DNA of 64,000 nt from Bigelowiella natans CCMP2755. Its lineage: Eukaryota; Protista; Cercozoa. This document shows, one piece after another, positions 8,558-47,212 of the stretch (positions are counted from its first letter, which is position 1; each line of letters starts with the position of its first letter). A program made the position numbers and the translations under genes. The notes under the pieces were generated by a model. That model saw only the letters and a list, made by a program, of their open reading frames with translations. It had not been told where the DNA came from and did no database searches. Location: contig ADNK01000501.1 in assembly GCA_000320545.1 (NCBI GenBank), positions 124,001-188,000 on the forward strand, in the 5' to 3' direction.

Positions 8558-11176
8558 TCAATTTTTGACATCATCAACGAAGCGCCGTGTAGTCATCAAT
8601 GACTCATTTAACAAGTCGACCAAATAGTACGGCTTGTTTCTAATCACGCGGCGAGCATCGTTTATATCAATATATTTCTTGTGCATTTTCTGAAGGAGAA
8701 GGAACGCGGTTTGGGGATTCTTGTATTTGTTACTCTCCTTGAAATGCTTGGACGCTGATATCAAACGCAAATTCACACAGATTCACACACACACACACAC
8801 ACACACAAGTAGTGACCACAATACTGAATGAAATTGAAACTGGGAAGAAGCATCAACCATGAAAATGTGGGACGTACCGTACAGTTTAGTGAAATGCTTG
8901 TGCTTAATTCCGTCTTCTATTAGCTTCTCAAAGTTTGAATCTTTGAAAGCATATGCCCGCATCTTGAAGAATTTCTCAAATAATCTCCAGCGCCAAACGT
9001 TCAGCATTAGGTCCTCTTTCTATTAAAGAATGAATGAATTGTCAGCCCGTGAATAACATACGAAGAACAATGAAAAAAAAGGCAACACACATCTACCAAA
9101 AACCATACATTGGAGTCGAAGCCCTGCAGCTGGATCGGTTTTGTGGATGTTGTAAGAATGTGTAGTCTCGGGCTTAGATCCATTAAATCCGTGAAGAGCT
9201 TCTCTCGATCTTCGATTTTCACTTCATCTGCGCCATCGATGATCTGGATAGATGAATTTTGTTTAATAATGCCAGCAATTTAAGTTTTAGAGAAAGTAAA
9301 AGCGAGTTGTGACACACCATGAGTACGGGACGATCGGAAATTGTCAGAAAGAATCTCTTGATTCTCTCGTAAGGATCTAGCTTTCCAGCTTTCTCCGTGT
9401 ATAAATACTTCATATCGGGAAGATTCATGAGGTTTTGCACCACTTCATTCCGACTCTTTCCGCCTGAAACCTGTGTGTGGAGATCGTTGAGGAAAATACA
9501 GTCTTAATGCAGATATTTCAATTCGTGGGTGATTTAATACATCTGGTTTCTACCCAAAAGATGCCGTCAGGTCCTTCTACGTCATAGTGCTTCAGACGCC
9601 AGGCTACATACTTTGCTGCTGAGGTCTTTCCAACCTTGCTTGGCCCTGTGAGTTGCACCCAGCGATGACGCGTTGAGTTCTCTTGATCACGTTGTACAGC
9701 CGTGAATAGATTCCTTTGGAGCTGCAAGTAGTGATCAACCGCCCACTTTAGCTGTTTCAGGAAAGGGGCTGGATGAAAGTATTGCGGGAGAGCAGGAAGC
9801 CAGCTCTTTAGTTTTGCGGGGGGAGGAGAATACGGTTTGAACGAGAATCTGACGTCATGGTTCCCGTCTTTGGGCAGCAAAAGATACTTTTTGACCTCCT
9901 CATTCAGACGTTTTGCCTTTCGAAGTAGCTCCTTATGTTGACTCGTATGTGTTTCATGGCCCTTCGATTGTTTAGTATAGGTACTGGCCATATCCTTCAG
10001 TTGTTGCTTCGCAGCTTCAAAGGAGGTCAAAACAGCATCCCCACCTAACAACCTCTCGAAAAAGACCGTCTGGAATATTCGTACGGCTTTATCGCCCAAT
10101 AACTCTTCTTCGCTGCATACTATTATATGGTCAACCGCTTTTAACCGAACAAGTACTTGAGCTACCGCTTCGCTCTTGCACGCAGCCAGCATCAATATCT
10201 TCAACGAGCACGTCGGCGTTTTCTTCGCCTCCATTATCATTTTAGTAAACTCATCAGACTTCACATAAACAGCCTTTCCTTGAGGAACATCGTTTTCAAA
10301 TTGGAGGCCATGTTCACCATGACAGCCCACTAGCATCGCAAAGCAATCAGATCGTAAAGCTCTTTTCATATTTTCTTTGGAAGCTCTCCATCTGGACATG
10401 TGAAGTTGGCAGTCCTCGTTATCAGCGCCACATCCGCTATTGACGCTGACGACTTTGCTCATGTCTTCCATCATTTCGCCGTCTTTCTCTAGTTGCAAGA
10501 TGGAGTGCATGTTGTTCAAGGGCAAAGCAAATACGAATGCCAAGTGGGCGGGTACCTCGATATCATTGTCAAAATGAAGTTTAGACCATCTGCATTGAAT
10601 CTCTGGTCGGACAACATAGAGAAAGAGGGTGAAGGAGAGAGATAGAGAGGGAGAGAGATAAATAGAGAGAGAGAGAGAGAGAGAGAAGCGTGTACTGCAA
10701 TTGGACACAGCAGTTCAAATCGCATGCACACGTTCCTACCTCGTCGCTCGTAAGCGGCCGCACCCACGCTTCTACTTTCGCATCAAAATTACTAGCATTT
10801 TTAGCCTCTCGAAGCTGCGGACCTCGCTCCACCCACATCAGCTCAACATACCTGTACAATGGGGGATTGCTTACCGCTTACAACCAAGAAAATGAACATT
10901 GTGCGATGACGAACAATCTCGCCCATTTTGCACGGATGGAGTGGTAAACAATTATGCGGATAAGAAAAAGATGATTTGCAAGGCATGTGCTATGAATACT
11001 GTTGCGAATCTGTACGTACTCTTCGAAGGTTATCCCCCCCCTCTTCGTAGCTGATGTGGGTAGACTTTTCATGCGTTTACTTCTGCATTGGGCGCTCTCC
11101 GAAGGATACAGTTGCTGCAGAGAGAAACTAATATGAGCTCCTATCCGATCTCATTAGCATATCAATTTATTTCTTG

Positions 11177-11214
<38 letters not shown>

Positions 11215-11669
11215 CGATTCATGCCATGATGTTGAGAGTTCTCACCTCGATGTGTTTCATTACAGTCTTGAGCTGAATGAGCCTTTTGCTGTCATCGCCC
11301 GATGAAGGCTCACATATATCGAATGTGTAACTGAAGTAATCGAAATACAGAGGTTACCTCATTATGTAATGATGCGGTATATATGCTCATCCTATCATCA
11401 CGATCATGATGATTGTGCCCACCTCTTAGCTGTTACAATCTCCTCTCCATCTCACATCATAATTCAATTAACTCTCCATTTGCACATTAGCGCATGCGCA
11501 ACCTACCGTAGTATACGGTGCTTGCTGAAGAGCTCGTAGAACGGTTCCCAAGACCGGAAATCAGCCATTTCGACATTCCTGGAGTTCGTCTTGGAGACAA
11601 TTCTCGTTAGTTTATTCTCGCAGGCCTTTCTCCAGTTGTCATAGTCAACGGTATGCGTCATTGTGCTAC

Positions 11670-11726
<57 letters not shown>

Positions 11727-11764
11727 TAGTCAGAGATAGTCAACGGTATGCGTCATTGTGCTAC

Positions 11765-11804
<40 letters not shown>

Positions 11805-11832
11805 TCAACGGTATGCGTCATTGTGCTACATT

Positions 11833-11874
<42 letters not shown>

Positions 11875-12287
11875 GAGAAAGGGAGAGAGAAAGTTGCATT
11901 ATTTATATCGTACCACAGAACTAAATCGCGAGAAAACGACGATTACTCGCTGCTTATATATGACCCTGCTAGCGACTACCTCTACTCTTCGCTACTTACT
12001 ACTACAAACGCACCGATTGAACAAAATGACATCAAACTCGGCAGCCTCACTGTCTTGGTACGGCCACGTGTGAATGCCATTGGCAATCTCGAGGATGAAT
12101 TGCAATATCCTGCGCACATAAAGACGCAGTCACGTTCGTGTTCATTCCCAAAATCTGGGGTAATATAATCGGTATAAATACGATGTCTAGGCACCTCGCG
12201 CAGTCTTCAGTTTCCGACAGAATTTCGATGTCTACTGACATCACACGACGGCTGCGCCCCCTCCTCCTGGCAAGATAGTTATGGCGG

Positions 12288-12329
<42 letters not shown>

Positions 12330-13401
12330 TGTGGTTGTGTTGTTACAAAAAGACCCTTTCTTCCTCTGAAGCATAGTGGTACTAACTCGGAAATGCACGG
12401 GTTCTAGATATAATTCAGCTTCGCCTCTGACGAAAACCTGACAAAAGCATGTATATGAAGAGGGATTGTCAGCAAGAAATAAACGTCAATTTCGAATAGA
12501 CGCACCAACAAGAAAAGAAAAACGAAATGAGTTGTACCTGCTGCTCCAGTTTGAATGGAACCGTCATACCTTCTGGTATTAGATAAATTATGCGTTTGAA
12601 ATAGAGCTTGACGTATTTTAAAAATTCCATGATGATGACGATGATGATAATAGTCAACATTAGACACCTTTTCGAAGCCGTTTTGTACGCTCAGTATTGG
12701 ATGAAAGCTCAGAAACTACGCAATACGAAAACACACACACACACACGCACACACGCACAAATGTAATTATTCGCAAAAGCGTAGTTACTTTTGAGAGGTT
12801 CTTTTTCGTTTAACATCGTTACTAATGGGGAAATGTGAAATATCAGCGTAACTACCGATGCTTCCGACGAGAATATCATGATAGGAATGCGGCCTGAGGC
12901 GTTTAAAGCGCAGCGAAAACTTCCCCATCACTTTGTACTCTTTCCTCTCTCTAGATGTCGAATCTTTCATCATCGAAGGCACCAGATACTTGTCTGTGCC
13001 CCCGATCTTGCAGAGTATCATGAACCTATTTAAAGCAGAAGGAAACGAAACTTATGACATGGAATACATTTACATCGAATCGAAGGCGAGAAATCTGCTT
13101 CTCTCATCGCAATCGATGAGTAATATTACTCTTTTATGTAATTTAATTACAATACAACCACCCACATCTCTCGTGTTTTGCGCTTAGCATGAATGCATGC
13201 ATGTGCTACTTCTCCAGGATGTTGCGCCCATATTCGTATAGCCTCATCTTCTCCAGCTCCTCTGCTGTGACTTTGCTGTCTTCATCGTGGCCCTCCTCAG
13301 TGAGCAGTGGCTTTGGGCAACGCCACAGGTGTCTCAACACTGCCTCGTGGATGATGACTCCTTCATCAACAAACCTATGTGTGTATGTGTGTGTGTGTGT
13401 G

Positions 13402-13440
<39 letters not shown>

Positions 13441-14867
13441 GAGAGAAGGAGAAAGAGAGCCTACACATGTCGGATACTCGTTAGCTATCGTACTTCAAAC
13501 ACGCTGTGGTATGTACATTTAACTAAAAAGTTCTAGAAAGATTCGCCGGTGTGAGTCTGGGCACACGCTAAAATATGTGAAGATGTAGCAGTATGTTCAC
13601 TCACTCGTCGACTTCCTCTTGGTAACGGGAAGCCCTGAATTTGTAAATAGTAGTAAAAGATATTTCGCCACACCATCATCATCATTAATATCATTATCAT
13701 CATTATTATTGCCCTAAATTTGACAATAGTAGAAGATATTTTCCCACACTGTCACCACCGTCGCCATCGTCATTATCATCATTATAGCGCTGAATTTGTA
13801 AATAGCATAAAATAGTTCGCCCACCATCATCGTCATCATCACCACCATCGTCAGTATTATTGCTAGCTTGTCTTATAGGCGCATTACAGTGCTTGGTTCT
13901 TGTACAATGAATCGTGCAAGTCTCGATCATATAGCAGCTTCTTCACCAGATCAATTAGATGCTGTGGTCGCATAACGACGTGCTGCCATTTAGTGCATTC
14001 ATTGGCCAATCACTACTCAAATCTCAGGTATTTAAATTCAGATAATAATGCTCACGTCTCGCAGGCCGTCCTCATCGAAATATATCGCCAACCCCAACTC
14101 ATGATACCTGTGCAAGAGAACAATCCATAAAAATTAGAGACAAATTGCTATGGGGTGAGGTGAGATGGATGATGCTTCCTCATTCTGCAGCTTACTACTT
14201 TCGTAGCATCCATCGTACTTCTCTCTCGTCGACGATGCCGTGCTCACGACATTCCTCCTGGACAGCTTGCAAGGTGAATATGGCCTGTTCCTTGGAGATC
14301 AAATCGTCGCACACCTTGGTCCACGCGGATGGAACTTCCTCGTTTACCTTATGTAAGCATTGCCGCCAATAATATTTCGTGCAAGTGCGAATACGCGGTC
14401 CATTAGATATATCAATGCGCAGTAGTAGTGTTAGTGGTAGCAGTTGTAGTAGTAGGAAGTGACGGCAGCAAACATATCGTTTCCTTTATATATCTGCAGT
14501 ATCGTTCGTTATACCTTTTTGTCGTTCTTGAGCCTCTCCATAACCTCATTACGCAGCTCCATGATCGTGCTGTGTACTTCCCCATTACTCGATCGAAACC
14601 TCATTGACGATGATAATAGCAGCAGCAGCAGCAATAACGAAAACGACAATGACACGGTGATAACGTACAGGAATAAGCATAGAGAACACCGGCAAAATGG
14701 AACGAGAAAAGAAATCAATTTCCGACTAGAAAGCATGTATCGATTTGTACTTGCTATCAGCAGGAAAGAAGATCAAATCTGCGGGTTGTGCAGCGCCGTT
14801 TGGGCGCCATCTTTTGCATCGGGACCACGGAAAGGGATTGAATCCCTCAAAAACCTGAACAGGTGGG

Positions 14868-14910
<43 letters not shown>

Positions 14911-15415
14911 TTCGTATGCTGTTTGCTGGAGGATACCTCTCGCGCAATTCTTGTGACTTTTCGATCGACATCGTTGAGGGTTTTCAGTAGCTCCTTTATT
15001 TAAAAAATACGATTTGAATAAGAACGTAACTCTCTTTTTCTCTCTCTCTCTTTACCTCTCTTTATCTATCTCTCACTCTTTCTTTGTGTGCGCGTGTGTG
15101 CTCATTACCTCAGGTTCCTTGAATTCTTTCAGCTTATCGATCTTCGTTCCCACAAGCACAATTGGCGCTCCTGGAGCAAATGTGCGGATATTCTGAAGCC
15201 AGAATCTTAGGTATTCTTCAGCGTCCCGTTGCTGCTTCGCTGCTGTTTCCCCTGTTTTCAAAGATATCAACTATACAGAGGCTCCTTGAGCATCCTTACA
15301 AGGATAATCGCACTCGCCCCTCCCCCCTCTCTCTTTCATTCTCTTCCCTCAATCTTTCTCTTGCTACGCAACAATATATATGCTCGTTCGAATACCATGT
15401 TTACCTGTTACTATT

Positions 15416-15461
<46 letters not shown>

Positions 15462-18359
15462 TTCCCCTGTAACGAATATCAAATGAACAACAAAATGTAA
15501 TATATCACCGTTACCATGGCTCTTCTCCCTCCCGAGGAACTCCTCCAAGGAAAACACCACCATGTAGAGGCAGTTACGGTTCAGAAATATCACGTGCGAA
15601 GTGTAGAACACCTCTTGACCCGCGAAATCCCATACCGACACCTGCGCATGCATTCATTTAGAAGAGGGGGGAGAGAAAGAGGAGAAGGAAGAGAACAAGT
15701 AACAATTCTTTATGTGGGATTGCTCTCTGCGGACGATTACGTACGTCAACATTTCGTGAGAGATGATGCACATAATATGTGCATGCACATGTGCATTCAT
15801 CTATACTCGAATAGCTTCCGGATTGTCCAAAGATTCTTGTATACGCCCAGGATCTAATTCCTGATCATGATTTCAAGTCATGGCCAATAAAATGGAGCAC
15901 GATCTCTCCTTCACGGAGTTCAATGTTTCATCAGGCTTCTATCGAGGCTATTATTCACTCCTACCTTGATAAGCTTCTCCTCATTTAGACTCTCTCCTTG
16001 AATTCCCTTGGATTCTTTGATATCCTCGTCAGTGCCGTTGCCACTGTCCTTCACGTCTGCGCTTTGCTTTGGAGATGAAAGTGAAAGTTTTCCTTCTTCT
16101 GCTACTATCTGCTTGTTTGTTGTCGCTGCGTTATCGTCTGAGCTGCTACTACTTACAATTTCAGTTCCTTTGGCATTTATTTCTGTGGAAGGTTTGCCAG
16201 TTTTCTCATCCTTATTCTTAAAAGGATATTGGGATAATAAAGGTACCTACGGCACATAGCAGCCGATTTTAAGCATAGGAAATGATTATTACAGTTGTGT
16301 TTATTTCCAAACGGAATCTAAAATCGAAATTGTACATGTCCACCTTTGGATCAATAGCCTCCTCTTTCACTTTCTCTTTCTCCTCCTGCTTCTCCCCCAC
16401 CTTTGTATTCTTTTCATCCTCGCATTTCTTCTTCAGATGTGCCAATACCAGGGCTCGCTCATAATTGCCTCCTGCGTAGACGATAATTCATAAATCATCC
16501 ACAGTCAGATAGGAAAGATTCAAACATATCTACTGCGTTCCAATTAGGTCGCTCTATACCGAAAGTGACGTTCTTGAACACGGTGTTCTGAAATGAATCA
16601 TACGGCCTTTCCACCTTGCGAAAAAAAAATTGAAGCAGACCGTGAAAAACAGACACTGGTCTCTTAATGAATTTCCCTCTATGCTTTGCATCTGACACAG
16701 TGGCCGCAGTGACGTCTTGGACGGTGACATCAGCCACAACCTTAGTATGATTGTGCACACAGAAGAGCAAGAATGAGCTTGTGAGCTCAATGTGGTGGTT
16801 GTGCTAGATCTGTTCGCTATCACTACCGTTGATTCTGTGACGCGAAACTCTTCACCCTTCAAAGCCATGTGTAACGTCGTTTTACCAGTGTGCCCTTTGC
16901 CAACAAACATCACACGAGACCGTCGCCAGGGCATCGTGCTAGAAAACACCCTTTTCACGGCCTCCATAGGGAGGGGGATGTCGGCAATCTACAACACAAG
17001 CAGAAAATTCGTTGTAAAATCGAAAGTATGCAAAGAGAAGAAAGGTACATGGAGAAAACAAGATGCTGCATTTCAATTCGGGATAGTATGAACAAAATGC
17101 TCATCTCTCGCGTTCATTCCCTATTTTTTCAGGTGGTTGTGCTGCATGGAGATAAACACCACATATACTACAACGAGTGAATGACTGAGAAAGGCCCGTC
17201 ATAAATTCAGAAATGCATAAAGTAATATAGCATGATTCTCTAAGCGACTGGCGAACAACTCCGAACTCAATTTTTAATATTTGAATTAACGAAACTGATG
17301 ACACCTGTTTTAGATACTCCACAACTCTAAGTTTGTGCTGAGCAACTGCTTCATCGAGAGCCGTTTGTCCCCTATTATTTTTGGTCTCGAGGTTGGCGTT
17401 GGCGTTCTCCACAAGGTACCGCACCGCATCAACGTGGCCATTGTAAGCAGCCCAGAGGAGGGGTGTATCTCCAACGTTGTTCTTGGCTTCGACGTTGGCG
17501 TTGGCGTTCTCCACAAGGTACCGCACCGCATCAACGTGGCCATTGCAAGCAGCCCAGAGGAGGGGTGTATTTCCATACTTGTTCTTGGCTTCGACGTTGG
17601 CGTTGGCGTTCTCCACAAGGTACCGCACCGCATCAACGTGGCCATTGTAAGCAGCCAAGAGGAGGGGTGTACTTCCAACGTTGTTCTTGGCTTCGACGTT
17701 GGCGTTGGCGTTCTCCACAAGGTACCGCACCGCATCAACGTGGCCATTGTAAGCAGCCAAGAGGAGGGGTGTATATCCATTGTTGTCCTCGGCTTCGACG
17801 TTGGCGTTGGCGTTCTCCACAAGGTACCGCACCGCATCAACGTGGCCATTCCAAGCAGCGCTGAGGAGGGGTGTATATCCATTCTTGCCCTTGGCTTCGA
17901 CGTTGGCGTTGGCGTTCTCCACTAGGTACTGCACCGCATCAACGTGGCCATTCAAAGCAGCCAAGAGGAGGGGTGTATTTCCATTCTTGCCCTTGGCCTC
18001 GATGTTGACACTCTTCGCCTCCACGAGACGGCGCATCGTGTCAACATCTCCCGATATAGCCGCATCGAGGAGGATCTGAAAGAGAACGACAAGAATCTCA
18101 TTTGCGATGCCACCCTGCACTACCATTAGTGGTGCATGGTTGTAAGTGCGCACATGGTAGTTTACGTTGTGGTTTTTCACATGAAGAGTGCGTTGCCGAT
18201 GGTGGCAGAAGAGTGGGAAATTGTCATGTTGTTTGACCAGGTTATGTGTGCTCATCACCGCATCTCTATCACCACCTCATCATCGCAACCATCCTTCCTA
18301 ACGCAGCCATTCCTTCCATCCTGTCTGTTCTCCCCATCGCGAGTATGCTTCCCCTCCAT
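8558..18359 (-). CDS. Roco protein with architecture Ankyrin repeats - Roc GTPase - COR - EF-hand-like - CHAT (caspase-like) protease - STAND/NB-ARC-like P-loop ATPase
   Basis: Ankyrin exon 17308-18076. Roc G1 MFVGKGHTGKTT (16878-16901), G3 VWDFAGQEVFYTSH (~15600-15635), G4 IVLVGTKID. COR segments VNEEVPSAW, YHELGLAIYF, VVMRPQHLID, YLVPSMM. EF-like YTFDICEPS...GGITFEEYVELM. CHAT MLVGCHG (His 10319-10321) and LMLAACKS (Cys 10178-10180). Walker A LTGPSKVGKT (9623-9646), Walker B PVLM|IIDGADE. GT-AG joins from COR through CHAT can be made in frame. Confidence 0.8.
11641..11830. repeat. Three copies of a 30-bp sequence separated by (GA)n tracts, duplicating a splice acceptor and exon start of the Roco gene
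   Basis: atagtcaacggtatgcgtcattgtgctaca occurs at 11641, 11736 and 11801. Confidence 0.92.
17380..18000 (-). repeat. Six near-identical 102-bp tandem repeats encoding 34-aa ankyrin units
   Basis: gttggcgttggcgttctccac recurs at 17392, 17494, 17596, 17698, 17800 and 17902 (period 102). Each unit encodes NGHVDAVRYLVENANANVEAKxxxGxTPLLxAAx. Confidence 0.97.
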
Positions 18360-26182: not shown

Positions 26183-28007
26183 CTAATCAGTCTTACCGGA
26201 GCCGAAGCAGATGCGTTTGTTCTCTTTCGAACGTTCCTCCGCTTCTCGTGCCAGGCGCATGAATAGATCTCTGCCTTTCTTTATATTTTCACGCTCATCA
26301 TCCAAATACTCTGTAATTCTCGTTTCTGCACGTTTTTTCAGCAACTCAGCGAGGCTGTCATAGTACAGAGAAAGGATTGGCCAATACTTGCCGGGAAGAA
26401 TCTTCTCCCAGCAACTAATAGCAGCCTGGACAAACATAGCGGACTGGCTGAAGTCCTCAGCCTTCTCGCAAGCTTCGGCGAGCATGGGATACAGCACATA
26501 AAGCATTCTATGACTGGGATGCATACCCCAAGTTTTAGTTGTTTGCAGGATTTTTTTCGCATGCTCCCGGTTCGCCTCTGGCGTTGATGATTTCACACCC
26601 TGCATCCTGTGAATGAAGTCTTTGATTTTCTCAGCAAGAACGCCATTGACCCATTTGGAGACCCGGCCCTTCTCCAAGACCACATCGTGTCCTTGAGTGC
26701 ATTTATGCCCCACCCGGACATTGTTCGCATCTGTCGTGGAGTTGAGATGCTCTGGTTTCCATCGCAAGGCTTCATCGGGAGAAGACGTCTCAAGGGGAAG
26801 GTTAAAGAGTCCCTGACAACCACGCTCGGGACAACAAAAGGCAGAAAGGTATTCTGTTCCCGTTTCTGCTTCAACCTTGCATCTCGTGCATGTGCATGCA
26901 ATTCCCCTGGTCACATTAAGCAGCTTCTGCCTCGTTTTGGAACTTTGATACAGGTCGGGCAACAAGGAAATTGTCAGCTCCTCTCCCTCAGAGACGTCCT
27001 TCACCACACGAATCTCGCACTTGCCGCTTCCAATTTTCAACACGCAATTTGGAGAGCAACTATGAGCGAATCTGGCAAGTCGAGGGAATACGCTGTAGTA
27101 TACTCCATTGTGCCCTGTGTGACAGAAATACTTGAATACTGCCACCAATCTCTCACATTCGTCTACACAGGATTCAATCCATCTCATGTCTCTGTCTGAA
27201 GGGGGAGTCAACAGTCCGTTGATCAAGTTTCGCTTGAAAATATCTGCTGCCGAGTGGATATCGTTGCGAAACGTGATGCTAAATTTAATCTTTTCGTTTG
27301 GAATAGGTATTCCGAGTGTGGCGCTCCGATTTGTATTGTTGTCTTGTGAAATTTGCCCCATGAGGCATAGAAGAGGGAATAAAAGATCTCGACTGACTTT
27401 AAGGGTGCGTGATATTCTCTGCAGGTCTGTAGCAAGGGTACAAATCCTCTTATGTCCCCGAATATAGTCTTGGTTCTTGCAGAGCTAATTTATTAACCAT
27501 AGAAGTGAAAACACACCGTAAGACGACGTTCAGCCAATGATTGTACTTGCAGTTAGATTATCTAATATACCGACGAGCAGTATGCTACTTGACCACATCT
27601 GCATTTAACAAACGGTTGGTTTGGCCGTGCAACTCGAAGACAATTCTGGCACAGGAGGGGCACGAACTGTTCCCGCGCATAGCTGAATGCCCTGTGGAGA
27701 GTCGAAACACGACGAGACATTCAAATTTTAGGAGCGCCACCATTGTTGATGGTTTGAATCATGGCAATTTTTCAATGCGTTTCTTACGCCGATTCCTGGT
27801 GTATGAGGGTCCCAGGGATGATCCGTCGTTTTGCGAAGACTTGAAATCCCTCAGGCCTGGTTCAAGAGTTAAACAGAAACTATTAGCTGCCTGATGACAG
27901 AACATTCGAAACTTTACTTGCCTGTAAAACTCCGAGGATATTACAGAGGACTTTCTTGTGCCCTCGTTCGGATTTTTAGGTACTGGCTCGAATATGGATA
28001 CGGCCAT
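26183..28007 (-). CDS. SET and MYND domain protein (SMYD family)
   Basis: N-SET GFQVFAKRRIIPGTLIHQE, MYND CQNC...CRCGQVAYCSS|LCKNQDYIRGHKRIC, C-SET RFAHSCSPNC...GEELTISL, post-SET CTCTRC and a TPR-like C-terminus. Confidence 0.88.
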
Positions 28008-42739: not shown

Positions 42740-45700
42740 CATGGATCCATTAAGGATGGAGGTGAATGCCTTTTCAACACTCTATGTTCGAAGGCTGACA
42801 AAATAAATAATCGAGATTTCGTTTCATAGAATTTTGATCTAATTACCTTCTTGGATTCGAATTGGAATCAGACATACATCAGCAGAAAAAGAGGCATGCC
42901 TCAATAATCATTCTTCTTTCTTCAGGACCATTTGGAAAGCAAGTGCACCAAAGTTATGGAGATTGATGAAGAGGTTAATACCATAATAGATTGTGTTGAA
43001 ATGCGTTTTAAGTTTCTACATACAGGAAAACATCGATCCTCTCGAGATGATTGAGGCTATGAACAAGGATAGAGAAACCGACGGCTATTTTGCTGAAGAG
43101 GGTAATTTCGACCAGAATCAGAATTGTCTTTCGGACCCGTACGGTCCTTCCTTGGTGCCAAATACCACGGGAAAATCAGATTCATCAGTCGATAGAGCAG
43201 CATCCACTGCGGTTCTGGGTATCAACGACAGGCCAAACTCGCCAACCGAAACCGAAGGAAGACAGGTTTTATAATCTTAATGAATGAGTCTTTGGTTGAG
43301 TACTTACAACATTATTTGCAATTCTAAGGAAACCTCGATGCAAAGTTCATCGGATCATTCGGACCATAACCACGAAAATAGGGACGAAATTGAACCGACA
43401 ACAAATCATAAGTCAAAAGATAGTGATACCGCAGGCAAAGACCCCAACAAATCCGATTCCAAAATTGGTGATGCCGAAGATGGTTCTCCAACTCAGGATA
43501 ATACTCAAGACGATTTTTTCAAGAACATTGACGACTCAACCTTGACTAAGAAACGTCAGCTGATGGATGAAAGGAAACGGAAATTGTTGCTCCTTTGTAA
43601 GCAAGAAGAGGAGAAAGCCAAAATGGAAGAAGAGGATCTATCGAATACTGAAGACAATGACCCCAATCATCCCGATTCCAATAGTAGCGATGTCGACAAG
43701 GACGTCGATGATTCTCCAACTGAGGATCATACTGAAGATAATGTTATCAAGAACACTAAAGACTCAGCATCGACTAAGAAAAGACAGCTAATGGATGAAA
43801 GGAAACGGAAATTGTTGCTTCTTTGCAAGCAAGAAGAGGAGAAAGAAACAATGGAAGAGGAGGAAAAAAAACGATTAACTGAGGAGTCTGGTGCAGTGAA
43901 GATTGGATCTTCGCGTTTCAACAAGAAGAAAAGAAAAGTTATTGTTGATGAGGATGATGAAGACAGCGATGATAGCGAAGAGGAGCCCAAGGCGAAAAGT
44001 CCAGAAAAATCTTCAGATGAAAATACTTTAAAATCAATCGTCATGGATGATGATGAAGAATCTGAATATGAAGAGAGTGGTGAAGAAGGTATGGACAAAG
44101 CGACAAAAGTGAAAGTTTCGAAATCCCAATTAGATCAAATCCAAGAAGAATCTCAAGCTCTGAAGGAGGAACTTGACCAAATAAATGGGGAGATTGCTAA
44201 CATGAAAACAGAGACCGAGAAGCAAGACAAAAAGTCGGAAAAGGAAGACACACGTGCTACATTTCGTAAGAAGAAATGGAACAAAAACGAAGATCTTAGT
44301 AAGACTCAGGCAGTTCTTCGCAAGCGATCAACAAAAAAACAGGTGAAGGTCACACGTAATTACAAAAAGATCAATCAGACTCTTGATGGAATTTTCAAAA
44401 GAATCAATGATCGTGCGCAAAATATCGCGCCATCGCGGGTCATGGTGAATTATGCTCGTCGATATGGTCGACTTCCCGAGATACCAGCGATCGAGTTTAG
44501 ATCGCCAACTGAAAAAGCAAGTAAGGAATCCCTATATAAGCAAATGACTGTACTGGAAGAAGATTTGGCGGACAAGCCCACTCTTGAAGGGTATATTGGC
44601 TGGGAAGAGCTTCAACAAAAGCGAAAATTTGAGAGTGAACAAACGAATAAAACGAATGCTGCAGCGGAACTTGCAGGATCAAAAGTAGAAAATGGACTCA
44701 GTACCGTGGATGCAGTCAAATCCGAACCTATTGAGAAAGAAAAAATTAAGCTAACTTTTGATAATGTTAAGACTTGTGATGGTTCTTCTTCTGACGAAGA
44801 AAGTAGTGAGGAGGAATTCTATATTTGTCCTCCCCCTAAATTGGGTGAAAAGAATCACAACAAGAAAACTAGAACACTTGCAGTGGCAGGTTTATCCCCT
44901 ATGGTCAAACGTAAAAATCGACAAGCTCTCCGCCAAAAACTTATTGAGAATACGAAACAACGCAAAGGGCCATCATATGAGTCCTATGAACCGTCTTGTG
45001 AATTTGCCCCGCCTGTAAAAATAGATGTGTCACTGGGAACGAATGAAGAAGCTGATGAAATGGAGGAGGAAGAAGAAGAAGATACTGGTATGATCAGTGA
45101 TGAAGAAGAACTTCTGCAGAAAATGCGAACAGACCAGGACGAGTTCGATGAGGACTGTGAGGAAGAGGAGGAAGGTGAAAACAATGATTCAGAGGAGGAC
45201 GAAGATATCGAACGAGGTGAAGAGAAAGAAGACGAGCAAGAAGAGGAGCAAAGTGAAGCCGTGACAAACAAAAGCGAACTTCCTGAGCCTACTCATATTG
45301 AAGCAACCAAAAAAACCATGCATCCAATTTTTGCTAAACCTAAAAATATTGTTCGCTCCAAAAGCAAAGCAGATTCGATGGAATTGCAACTTCGTCTTGA
45401 ACATACCCAATGCATTGATACAGACGTTCAGAATTCCAATAAGACAAAGGAGGATTTGAGTACGGAAAAATCCGAGTCGCAGCCCCTAAGTCGTACCCAA
45501 TCTTATGGAGCGGACATTGACATTGGGAACGACAAGGAAGATTCCAAAATACCAAACACGGTAATTACAGAATCACTTCATCTGGATCACACCCAATATG
45601 TAGATACGAAAGTTCAAACCGAAACTCAAAATTCCGAGATCGGAGCGCGGAAAGTTGGCCTTCCGGTGGACGTGACTAAAGCACCTTCTCCCTCAATTCC

Positions 45701-47212
45701 AGAGACACTACCCATTCCCGATACCCTACCTATTAACGAAAAGACGCAATCCTCAGTGGAATCAAGTTATGAAGAAACACAGACTTTAGAAATACCTTCA
45801 CAGGCAGACTCTGAGACCGAAGACTCTTTAAAGAGGCCTCTTCTATCTCAAGACATGAAAGCTGCTAGGAGAGAGTCGCTTGGCAGCGAGACCACGCAAG
45901 GGGGATCTAATGAACATGTTCTTAACCAGTCTCAAGGTGAGAGTGTTTCCAATTCCCAAGAAGATCAGCAGACTGATTTCAGAGCCAAAATCTCTAGCAT
46001 AGTAGAGGATGAAGCCGAGGAGTCAGATGATTGCAAAGGAATATTACCGGAAGATGAAGAGATAGATGATGAAAACGAGGAAGGAGATTTAGCTGATCTT
46101 GTGGCACCAGAGGACGAAATTCAAGCAGAAATGGAAGAAGCTGAAAGAATTCTTGAAGCAGATAGGATATTAGAAGAAGAACATATCGAAGAAGAAGCTG
46201 AGCTGAAGGCCCTTGAAGAACGATTTGTTAGAGGCGGCCAAAAAAACCACAAAAAAGCAAAACTCAAAGCACAGGAAGAAAATTTTGAGGAGGACGAGGG
46301 TGTTAAGTTGAAGTTTGAACAGATTGAGGAAGAGGAAGGGCGAAAACTGAATACGTGGGAGAAAAAACTCATTCAAGCTGAAGAGTTGTGCATTCAATCT
46401 GAGGACCGGGGCCTTATTTCTGACTCTGAAGACGAAGATGAAGATGAGATCAAAAGCCGGCTTGAGCGAAAAGTATCAATAATAGATTTTGAGGAAAGTC
46501 AGGGATCTCAGCGTTTGTTGACCAGAATAGAATCCGAAAGGTCATCGCAGGCAATTTTCTCTATGACTAGGAAGACAAATCTAGCAAGGTCTCGCTCTAC
46601 TGGTAGCAGCGCGTCTAACTTCGAGGCTTTCAACAAAAGCATCGCCATGGATAGACCGACTCTGAAACGCAAGCACTCTTTCATTGGCAAGCCGCTCACG
46701 GAACGTCAGACTAGCATATTAAGCAGACGCGCATCTTCCACGTCACTGTGCGCCTTTTCAGGGGGATCGAAGAAATCTAAATTGAGAAAGGTAAATGGAA
46801 TTTCACCTATGCTTTTATATGAACGCGTATGAGACTGATGTAATATTAATTTCAGATTCATAGAAGCTCGTCCAGGTCGTTCGTATTTGCTCGAGATTTT
46901 GATACAGCCTCTTTACCAGGTTCAGTCTTGTACTCTGCATCCCTTTTTTAAACTTGACACTTCCTCCGATATACGAAGGTGGCAAACCACCTCTATCTAG
47001 GTCCCTATCCAGACCTCCACTACAGCGCTCGGTTTCCTTGGCCACCGTACGCTCAACTGGGTCTTCAAATAGTTCAAGGTCAATTCATTAAAAGATCTTT
47101 TATTACAATTCTAATTATGTTTATTCTTTGCATTTACAGCAAATCATCTGATGGAGGTTCTCTATTTGCGGCATTAGCAAAGACGAGATATAAACGACCG
47201 ACGAGAAAGTGA
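42740..47212 (+). CDS. Large acidic, mostly disordered nuclear protein, Claspin/Mrc1-like
   Basis: A 3.5 kb open exon (43284-46790) flanked by short exons, with D/E-rich tracts and many SQ/TQ motifs. KISSIVEDEAEESDD...DLADLVAPED resembles the Mrc1/Claspin 'EAEESE/DE...D..ID' segment. The family call rests on motif resemblance only. Confidence 0.55.
43440..43865 (+). repeat. Internal ~75-codon tandem duplication in the Claspin-like ORF
   Basis: DPNK/HSDS...SPTQ/ED...TKKRQLMDERKRKLLLLCKQEEEK..MEEE is present twice. atggatgaaaggaaacggaaattgttgct occurs at 43563 and 43791. Confidence 0.9.

Follow-up and report, generated by a model that had tools for sequence, protein, structure and literature searches.

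In a 64,000-nucleotide (nt) stretch of contig ADNK01000501.1 from Bigelowiella natans CCMP2755 (hereafter the window, in whose positions all coordinates are given), a single minus-strand gene encodes one expressed polypeptide that runs from ankyrin repeats through a Roc GTPase, a COR domain, an EF-hand-like linker and a CHAT domain, a predicted cysteine protease, to a truncated STAND/AAA+ ATPase. The Roc-COR-CHAT core of this candidate defence receptor is already known from bacteria, and what is new is its eukaryotic occurrence and the added STAND domain. The features of the gene, with the evidence for each, are as follows.

8558-18359, minus strand: whole gene, Ank-Roc-COR-EF-like linker-CHAT-truncated STAND (frame, splice sites, spliced transcripts, JGI model)
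18276-18359, minus strand: exon 1 with the start codon (transcript starts, upstream in-frame stop)
17305-18075, minus strand: ankyrin exon (Pfam match above cut-off)
14751-16988, minus strand: Roc GTPase, exons 3-11, motifs G1-G5 (Pfam Roc, E 3e-16 on P0183, above cut-off)
12014-14599, minus strand: COR, exons 12-23, COR-A and divergent COR-B (Pfam COR-A, E 2e-12 on P0186, above cut-off)
10740-11665, minus strand: helical linker with two EF-hand-like helix-loop-helix units (weak predicted model)
9833-10555, minus strand: predicted CHAT caspase-fold cysteine protease domain (alignment profile, paralogue model fold, paralogue Pfam)
10319-10321, minus strand: predicted catalytic His1287 (invariant in 10/10 paralogues; aligns with SAVED-CHAT H375)
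10178-10180, minus strand: predicted catalytic Cys1334 (invariant; aligns with SAVED-CHAT C422)
9109-9800, minus strand: STAND/AAA+ nucleotide-binding domain (fold matches, Pfam below cut-off)
8558-9019, minus strand: short helical C-terminus and stop codon (paralogue model, motif inspection)

The gene model was built from coordinates and then corrected with RNA (Logan contigs and transcriptome contigs). It comprises 32 exons and 31 introns, all GT-AG and 73-348 nt long, and encodes 1750 amino acids (aa) with zero internal stops. The ATG in exon 1 has an in-frame stop just upstream and transcripts that start 8-13 nt before it; a Met-Gly myristoylation start is absent from this N-terminus. Two transcriptome contigs from two samples, L038 (4785 nt) and L039 (5203 nt), each cover exon 1 through the last exon, and COR-to-CHAT splice junctions are present in Logan RNA contigs from three studies at offsets that equal the model exon lengths exactly. 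One Logan contig of ~2 kb begins at the Roc/COR boundary and reaches 10387, within CHAT, with internal offsets base-exact with the model exons, and transcriptome proteins of 783-1040 aa contain COR, linker, CHAT and ATPase in a single frame. Transcripts also confirmed the protein stop shortly after the NTPase, and the Joint Genome Institute (JGI) model Bigna1/86167 (P0183), which covers exon 3 to the last exon with the ankyrin exon missed, joins Roc to the end of the ATPase. These data bear out the single gene proposed in a preliminary description of this DNA, and the spanning contigs contradict the alternative considered there of transcripts ending between 12200 and 10900 with a separate start for CHAT. 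The RNA contigs are assembled sequences, and in the Logan set the alleles of two near-identical copies, the window gene and a tandem copy, are mixed; because both copies share the exon layout, the single-gene conclusion stands.

All motifs quoted in the preliminary description were found at their places on the minus strand in one reading frame, and neither a stop nor a CTAG-rich spacer lies in the COR-CHAT gap, as it had said: CTAG density is 2.0 per kb in the gap, 15 per kb after the stop and 2.6 per kb in the whole window. The continuous frame that it assumed exists, but several of its splice joins were wrong. The peptide WSKLHFD, read there as coding, is intronic because the CHAT exon starts at 10555, and between ETEDCA and the exon to which it had been joined directly (STMTHT) lies a missed exon at 12109-12014. 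RNA ruled out splice acceptors at 10600 and 10589 as well as a 42-nt intron at 16656-16615, and it also excluded 16216 as an exon start. Within introns, at 11866-11703 and ~13820-13640, there are short tandem copies of the splice acceptor and the first bases of the next exon; those at the first site have a 65-nt period, and at both sites RNA uses the last copy. Intron retention occurs in L039.

Domain searches used single exons of the window gene, with the database entries P0183, P0186 and P0001 standing in for the full protein. The ankyrin, Roc and COR assignments made earlier held, with Pfam matches above cut-off for ankyrin, Roc and COR-A. The Roc motifs G1-G5, among them G1 at 16901-16878, G3 at 15632-15615 and G4 at 15150-15136, and the COR domain directly after Roc confirm the protein as a Roco, or AP-GTPase. 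A charged, low-complexity insertion of ~200 aa separates G2 from G3. For the COR region, the top Foldseek matches of a low-confidence model were all Roco/LRRK COR domains; COR-B gave no Pfam match, and a weak predicted model suggests it. The ankyrin exon holds ~7 repeats, six of which are 102-nt units that are 93% alike.

The linker was modelled as two helix-strand-helix units with a predicted local distance difference test (pLDDT) score of ~70-77, while the joint COR-linker model was of low confidence (mean pLDDT 47). Searches of Pfam, PDB sequences and the ESM Atlas found no EF-hand match in it. Because an EF-hand profile match and acidic loop residues, the calcium ligands, are both missing, we regard the linker as EF-like and probably not calcium-binding; the EF label of the preliminary description has no profile behind it.

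The CHAT assignment was made because Pfam matches in paralogues, an alignment profile and the predicted fold agree. On the window's own CHAT exon, Pfam PF12770 gave no match, nor did NB-ARC on the CHAT/P-loop exon; eight more distant paralogous CHAT loci passed the PF12770 cut-off. A profile of ten paralogues had SAVED-CHAT (8tl0) as its sole PDB match (E 3e-6). The paralogue P0001 (79% identical), modelled with AlphaFold at a mean pLDDT of 81, superposes its CHAT domain on 8tl0 with Z 22.4 and a root-mean-square deviation of 2.4 over 200 aligned residues; separase scored far lower (Z 13.0). The spacing between His1287 and Cys1334, 47 residues, equals that between H375 and C422 of SAVED-CHAT. 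The CHAT domain with its His and Cys that had been proposed is therefore confirmed at the level of predicted fold, with an intact dyad, and the domain is a predicted protease.

The ATPase that follows has an intact Walker A (9646-9623) and an intact Walker B that straddles 9323-9235. Its sensor-1 strand (9159-9148) has no Arg, the GxP position (8722-8714) is degenerate and reads KNP, and, because only ~50 residues follow the domain, there is no MHD motif and no C-terminal sensor; a full winged helix and C-terminal repeats are absent as well. Fold matches of the P0001 model were Cdc6/Orc1 (Z 14.8), ZAR1 (13.8) and CED-4 (13.8), a tie that gives no preference for NB-ARC/NACHT over other AAA+ proteins. 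On the window domain, Pfam AAA_22 (E 1e-4) and NACHT (E 7e-3) were both below cut-off; homologous STAND domains in the family have NACHT/NB-ARC matches above it. The STAND switch of the preliminary description accordingly keeps its fold and Walker motifs and loses its canonical reading. Without the sensor-1 Arg, GxP, MHD and any repeat sensor behind it, and with a Walker A that is degenerate in one paralogue (C2840), the domain is a truncated STAND/AAA+ fold and not a canonical NLR switch. The protein itself is no NLR, having no repeat sensor C-terminal to the nucleotide-binding oligomerization domain, and an NLR- or inflammasome-like way of working would be by inference.

A paralogue count, which the preliminary description had proposed, gave seven colinear loci in the genome with the same architecture exon for exon: the window gene, the tandem copy, C2356, C3059, C2355, C1548 and C1834. 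C2592, C777 and more distant CHAT loci are known from match coordinates. The window copy is intact. The tandem copy, a recent duplicate of ~13 kb on the next contigs (G000:C3237:1-7886 and C3238; L026, L027), carries five additional ankyrin repeats, and its Roc/COR-boundary exon, which matches window 14854-14751, is interrupted by a stop codon. It is still transcribed and is the source of L038, and its stop allele was seen in none of the Logan RNA contigs. C1548 has a stop codon in its CHAT exon. C2356 is a mosaic, with a synonymous divergence (dS) to C2355 of 0.06 in COR and 0.81 in CHAT and a CHAT dS to C1548 of 0.27; it looks like a recombinant with a front near C2355 and a tail near C1548. 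The broken copies, changes in repeat number and recombination are signs of birth and death. The C3059 transcript (L037) runs from the ankyrins through STAND with one COR intron kept, which the MMETSP version (P0179) splices. In public annotation the family is obscured: JGI divides each of two paralogues between two models, and the CHAT domain escapes Pfam.

Between paralogues, the ratio of nonsynonymous to synonymous divergence (dN/dS) in the core (Roc, COR, linker, CHAT and STAND) is 0.11-0.5, which corresponds to purifying selection. Roc is the most constrained part (0.11-0.12), and CHAT is at ~0.25 at dS up to ~1. For the ankyrin units of the window gene, the minimum count of changes was 18 nonsynonymous to 2 synonymous, an excess over the core (p 3e-5 against omega 0.25), and the changes are concentrated at hairpin and first-helix positions. 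These positions are the usual binding face of ankyrin repeats. Pooled across paralogues, ankyrin selection was not above 1. In C2356, C2355, C1548 and C3059, each ankyrin repeat occupies an exon of its own, and the exon-intron units, 255-530 nt long, stand in tandem with variation on the binding face. By these substitution patterns, the ankyrins appear to be under relaxed or diversifying change and the core under purifying selection.

The same chassis also occurs with a different output. The transcript protein P0196 from locus C2592 has a Roc-COR-linker chassis 58-62% identical to that of the window protein and a TKL kinase tail, and the two part exactly at the phase-0 intron before the CHAT exon, after 10740. 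At C777, chassis exons are likewise followed by kinase exons, and the Amorphochlora amoebiformis homologue P0201 (cNMP-Roc-COR-linker-kinase) shares the linker up to the tail intron, so that the linker is common to kinase-tailed relatives. Given this layout in the Amorphochlora homologue, the kinase tail probably came first.

The CHAT-STAND tail is also found on other fronts. Locus C590 (L033, L034) contains an intronless open reading frame (ORF) of 2253 aa with the order NB-ARC-TPR-CHAT-STAND, C3401 carries the cassette as a tandem pair, and in other organisms CHAT-STAND stands behind LRR, SPRY or receiver domains. From its distribution, CHAT-STAND behaves as a portable effector cassette. The C590 ORF adjoins another NB-ARC-TPR ORF and another CHAT-STAND exon, and C1201 is similar.

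Among the closest known systems are bacterial LRR-Roc-COR-CHAT proteins, which also proceed from a repeat sensor to Roc-COR and then CHAT. The label Roc-COR-CHAT is used for a gasdermin-cleaving protease of Runella zeae (bioRxiv 2021.06.07.447441). For bacterial AP-GTPase proteins, Kaur et al. 2021 described at least 24 C-terminal effectors, caspases included (PMC8195603). Of the bacterial Roco ORFs that we sampled, 5/80 end in CHAT, with STAND after CHAT in 0/5. The B. natans protein differs from these in its ankyrins, eukaryotic host, EF-like linker before CHAT and STAND after it. No description of a eukaryotic Roc-COR-CHAT, or of any Roc-COR-CHAT-STAND, was found in the open-access literature; the architecture that the preliminary description did not recognise is thus new in these two respects but has its core in bacteria. 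Protein searches, which were word-limited, missed even the bacterial Roc-COR-CHAT and so do not show absence elsewhere, found Roc-COR with CHAT only in Bigelowiella, and a metagenome scan found no relatives. In a CHAT tree, Bigelowiella CHATs group together across front ends and apart from bacterial Roco CHATs, which favours convergence with bacterial Roc-COR-CHAT. On a contig of a Legionella metagenome-assembled genome (L048), a bacterial Roco ORF with a length of 1998 aa or more has two C-terminal TKL-type kinase domains in a eukaryote-like layout.

The Ankyrin-Roc-COR chassis is shared with Roco kinases (LRRK1/2, DAPK1, Dictyostelium Rocos, P0201, C2592 and C777), from which the window protein differs in its output, a predicted protease and an ATPase where those have a TKL kinase. 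Brown-algal LRR-ROCO and NB-ARC-TPR receptors likewise include an expanded Roco family with variable N-terminal repeats. Ectocarpus ROCOs have one LRR per exon (PMC3341825), as several B. natans paralogues have one ankyrin repeat, and brown-algal ROCOs are proposed immune receptors, a few of which carry a C-terminal peptidase domain, IPR009003 (PMC11378527); the window gene differs in its ankyrins in place of LRRs, its CHAT-STAND tail and its repeats, which share one exon. The same two-domain cassette occurs in CHAT-STAND proteins (CHAT with NB-ARC, NACHT or AAA_16) of protists and bacteria; in the window protein, the STAND is shorter and more degenerate. CHAT was present in 32/37 long homologues and a STAND match in most, ESM Atlas clusters matched the cassette at template modelling (TM) scores of 0.63-0.66, and a Roc G3 motif occurred in 0/150 of the best homologues. 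In NLRs and apoptosomes (ZAR1, CED-4, Apaf-1), the effector lies directly N-terminal to a STAND-fold ATPase, as it does here (Z 12.5-13.8); unlike them, the window protein has no C-terminal sensor, GxP or MHD, and its repeats are N-terminal, ahead of the GTPase.

On balance, we slightly favour the interpretation that the protein is a Roco defence receptor with protease output. Its activation steps and biological role are drawn by analogy with Runella Roc-COR-CHAT and SAVED-CHAT. The variable ankyrin face would bind a foreign or altered-self ligand, and binding would shift the GTP/GDP cycle of Roc and the COR-mediated state between monomer and oligomer. This shift may gather or free CHAT domains, as oligomerisation does in SAVED-CHAT, while the truncated STAND would serve as a nucleotide-bound latch or oligomerisation aid for the neighbouring CHAT and not as a sensor-driven NLR switch. 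Activated CHAT would then cleave a substrate, leading to defence or cell death. As to origin, the kinase of an LRRK-like chlorarachniophyte gene most likely gave way, at the phase-0 intron, to a resident CHAT-STAND cassette, and the result would be convergent with bacterial Roc-COR-CHAT. A more specific and tentative proposal, which we would put a little short of even, is an inflammasome-like receptor of a eukaryote whose caspase-like protease is gated directly by a GTPase switch of the LRRK2 type in place of an NLR ATPase, and whose kinase was swapped for a mobile CHAT-STAND cassette also present on NB-ARC-TPR receptors.

Several results weigh against the defence receptor. Expression of the gene was nearly nil in one raw RNA run (X24). 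Tested against neutrality, the ankyrin excess in the window gene falls short of significance (p 0.12); in four other paralogues the ankyrin ratios are 0.4-0.9. Gasdermin PF04598, a mammalian-type profile that may miss bacterial and fungal types, had no match in the B. natans genome. As for the proposed history, in approximately unbiased (AU) tests the order of tail events within Bigelowiella was not settled by the tree (AU p 0.18), and a closer link of CHAT to bacteria, that is, a bacterial origin, was not rejected (AU p 0.23).

The absence of significant ankyrin selection against neutrality is compatible with a signalling switch outside immunity, in which GTP gates a protease that serves development, stress or the cell cycle, in parallel to LRRK2 and Dictyostelium Roco kinases or to separase-like cleavage. 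The descent of the chassis from a conserved cNMP-Roc-COR-kinase gene in Amorphochlora and the place of separase among CHAT relatives point the same way. However, the lineage-specific expansion to seven loci, with its broken copies, repeat-number change, recombination and tail swaps, suits conflict genes better, and the same tail occurs on an NB-ARC-TPR receptor; we therefore consider such a switch unlikely, though it is the foremost of the rivals. A CHAT-STAND without a sensor of its own behind several unrelated fronts, on a chassis so similar to the kinase-tailed version, would also be expected of a guard or integrated decoy, in which the Roco front mimics kinase-tailed paralogues targeted by an invader and tampering, not the GTPase cycle, frees a STAND-driven CHAT oligomer. 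The strong constraint on Roc with every G motif intact, the truncation of STAND and the degenerate Walker A of C2840 make this improbable. That the loci are tolerated chimeras or pseudo-enzymes, transcribed products of exon shuffling with the protease uncoupled from the GTPase, would fit the stops in 2/7 loci and the introns kept in some transcript assemblies, but we give it very little credence in view of the invariant dyad and the low CHAT dN/dS between paralogues in which the complete architecture is retained. A pair of genes, or a predominant short CHAT-STAND transcript with joining only by read-through, would agree with a contig depth that rises 1.4-3.3-fold from COR to the CHAT exon and with contig breaks near 10390, but this alternative is refuted to within a trace of doubt because spliced contigs run COR into CHAT and first to last exon, the COR-to-stop ORFs agree, and 3' bias explains the depth step, which leaves room for a minor extra short isoform.

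The depth step itself falls in 10404-9334, and the contig breaks lie beside a CAG at 10394-10392; one RNA contig diverges at 9334. Possible sources are 3' bias, a further isoform and a copy missing from the assembly; no third near-identical locus was found.

Should the inflammasome-like proposal be correct, a single-celled alga would have a plug-in repertoire of immune sensors and effectors convergent with bacterial Roc-COR-CHAT-gasdermin systems. We know of no innate immunity or regulated-death system that has been characterised in Rhizaria, for which the gene is a concrete candidate. Roc-COR control of the output domain is still debated for LRRK2. This genome contains natural versions of much the same chassis with a kinase and with a protease as output, and the swap between them falls at one intron; such a pair allows a direct test of the GTPase cycle as a general activation switch with a simple cleavage readout.

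Elsewhere in the window, an intronless, A-rich ORF of 1182 aa (43284-46832, plus strand) has no Pfam match and stands out in an intron-rich genome, and a further intronless ORF of 392 aa (26183-27361, minus strand) encodes a SMYD-like SET-domain protein.

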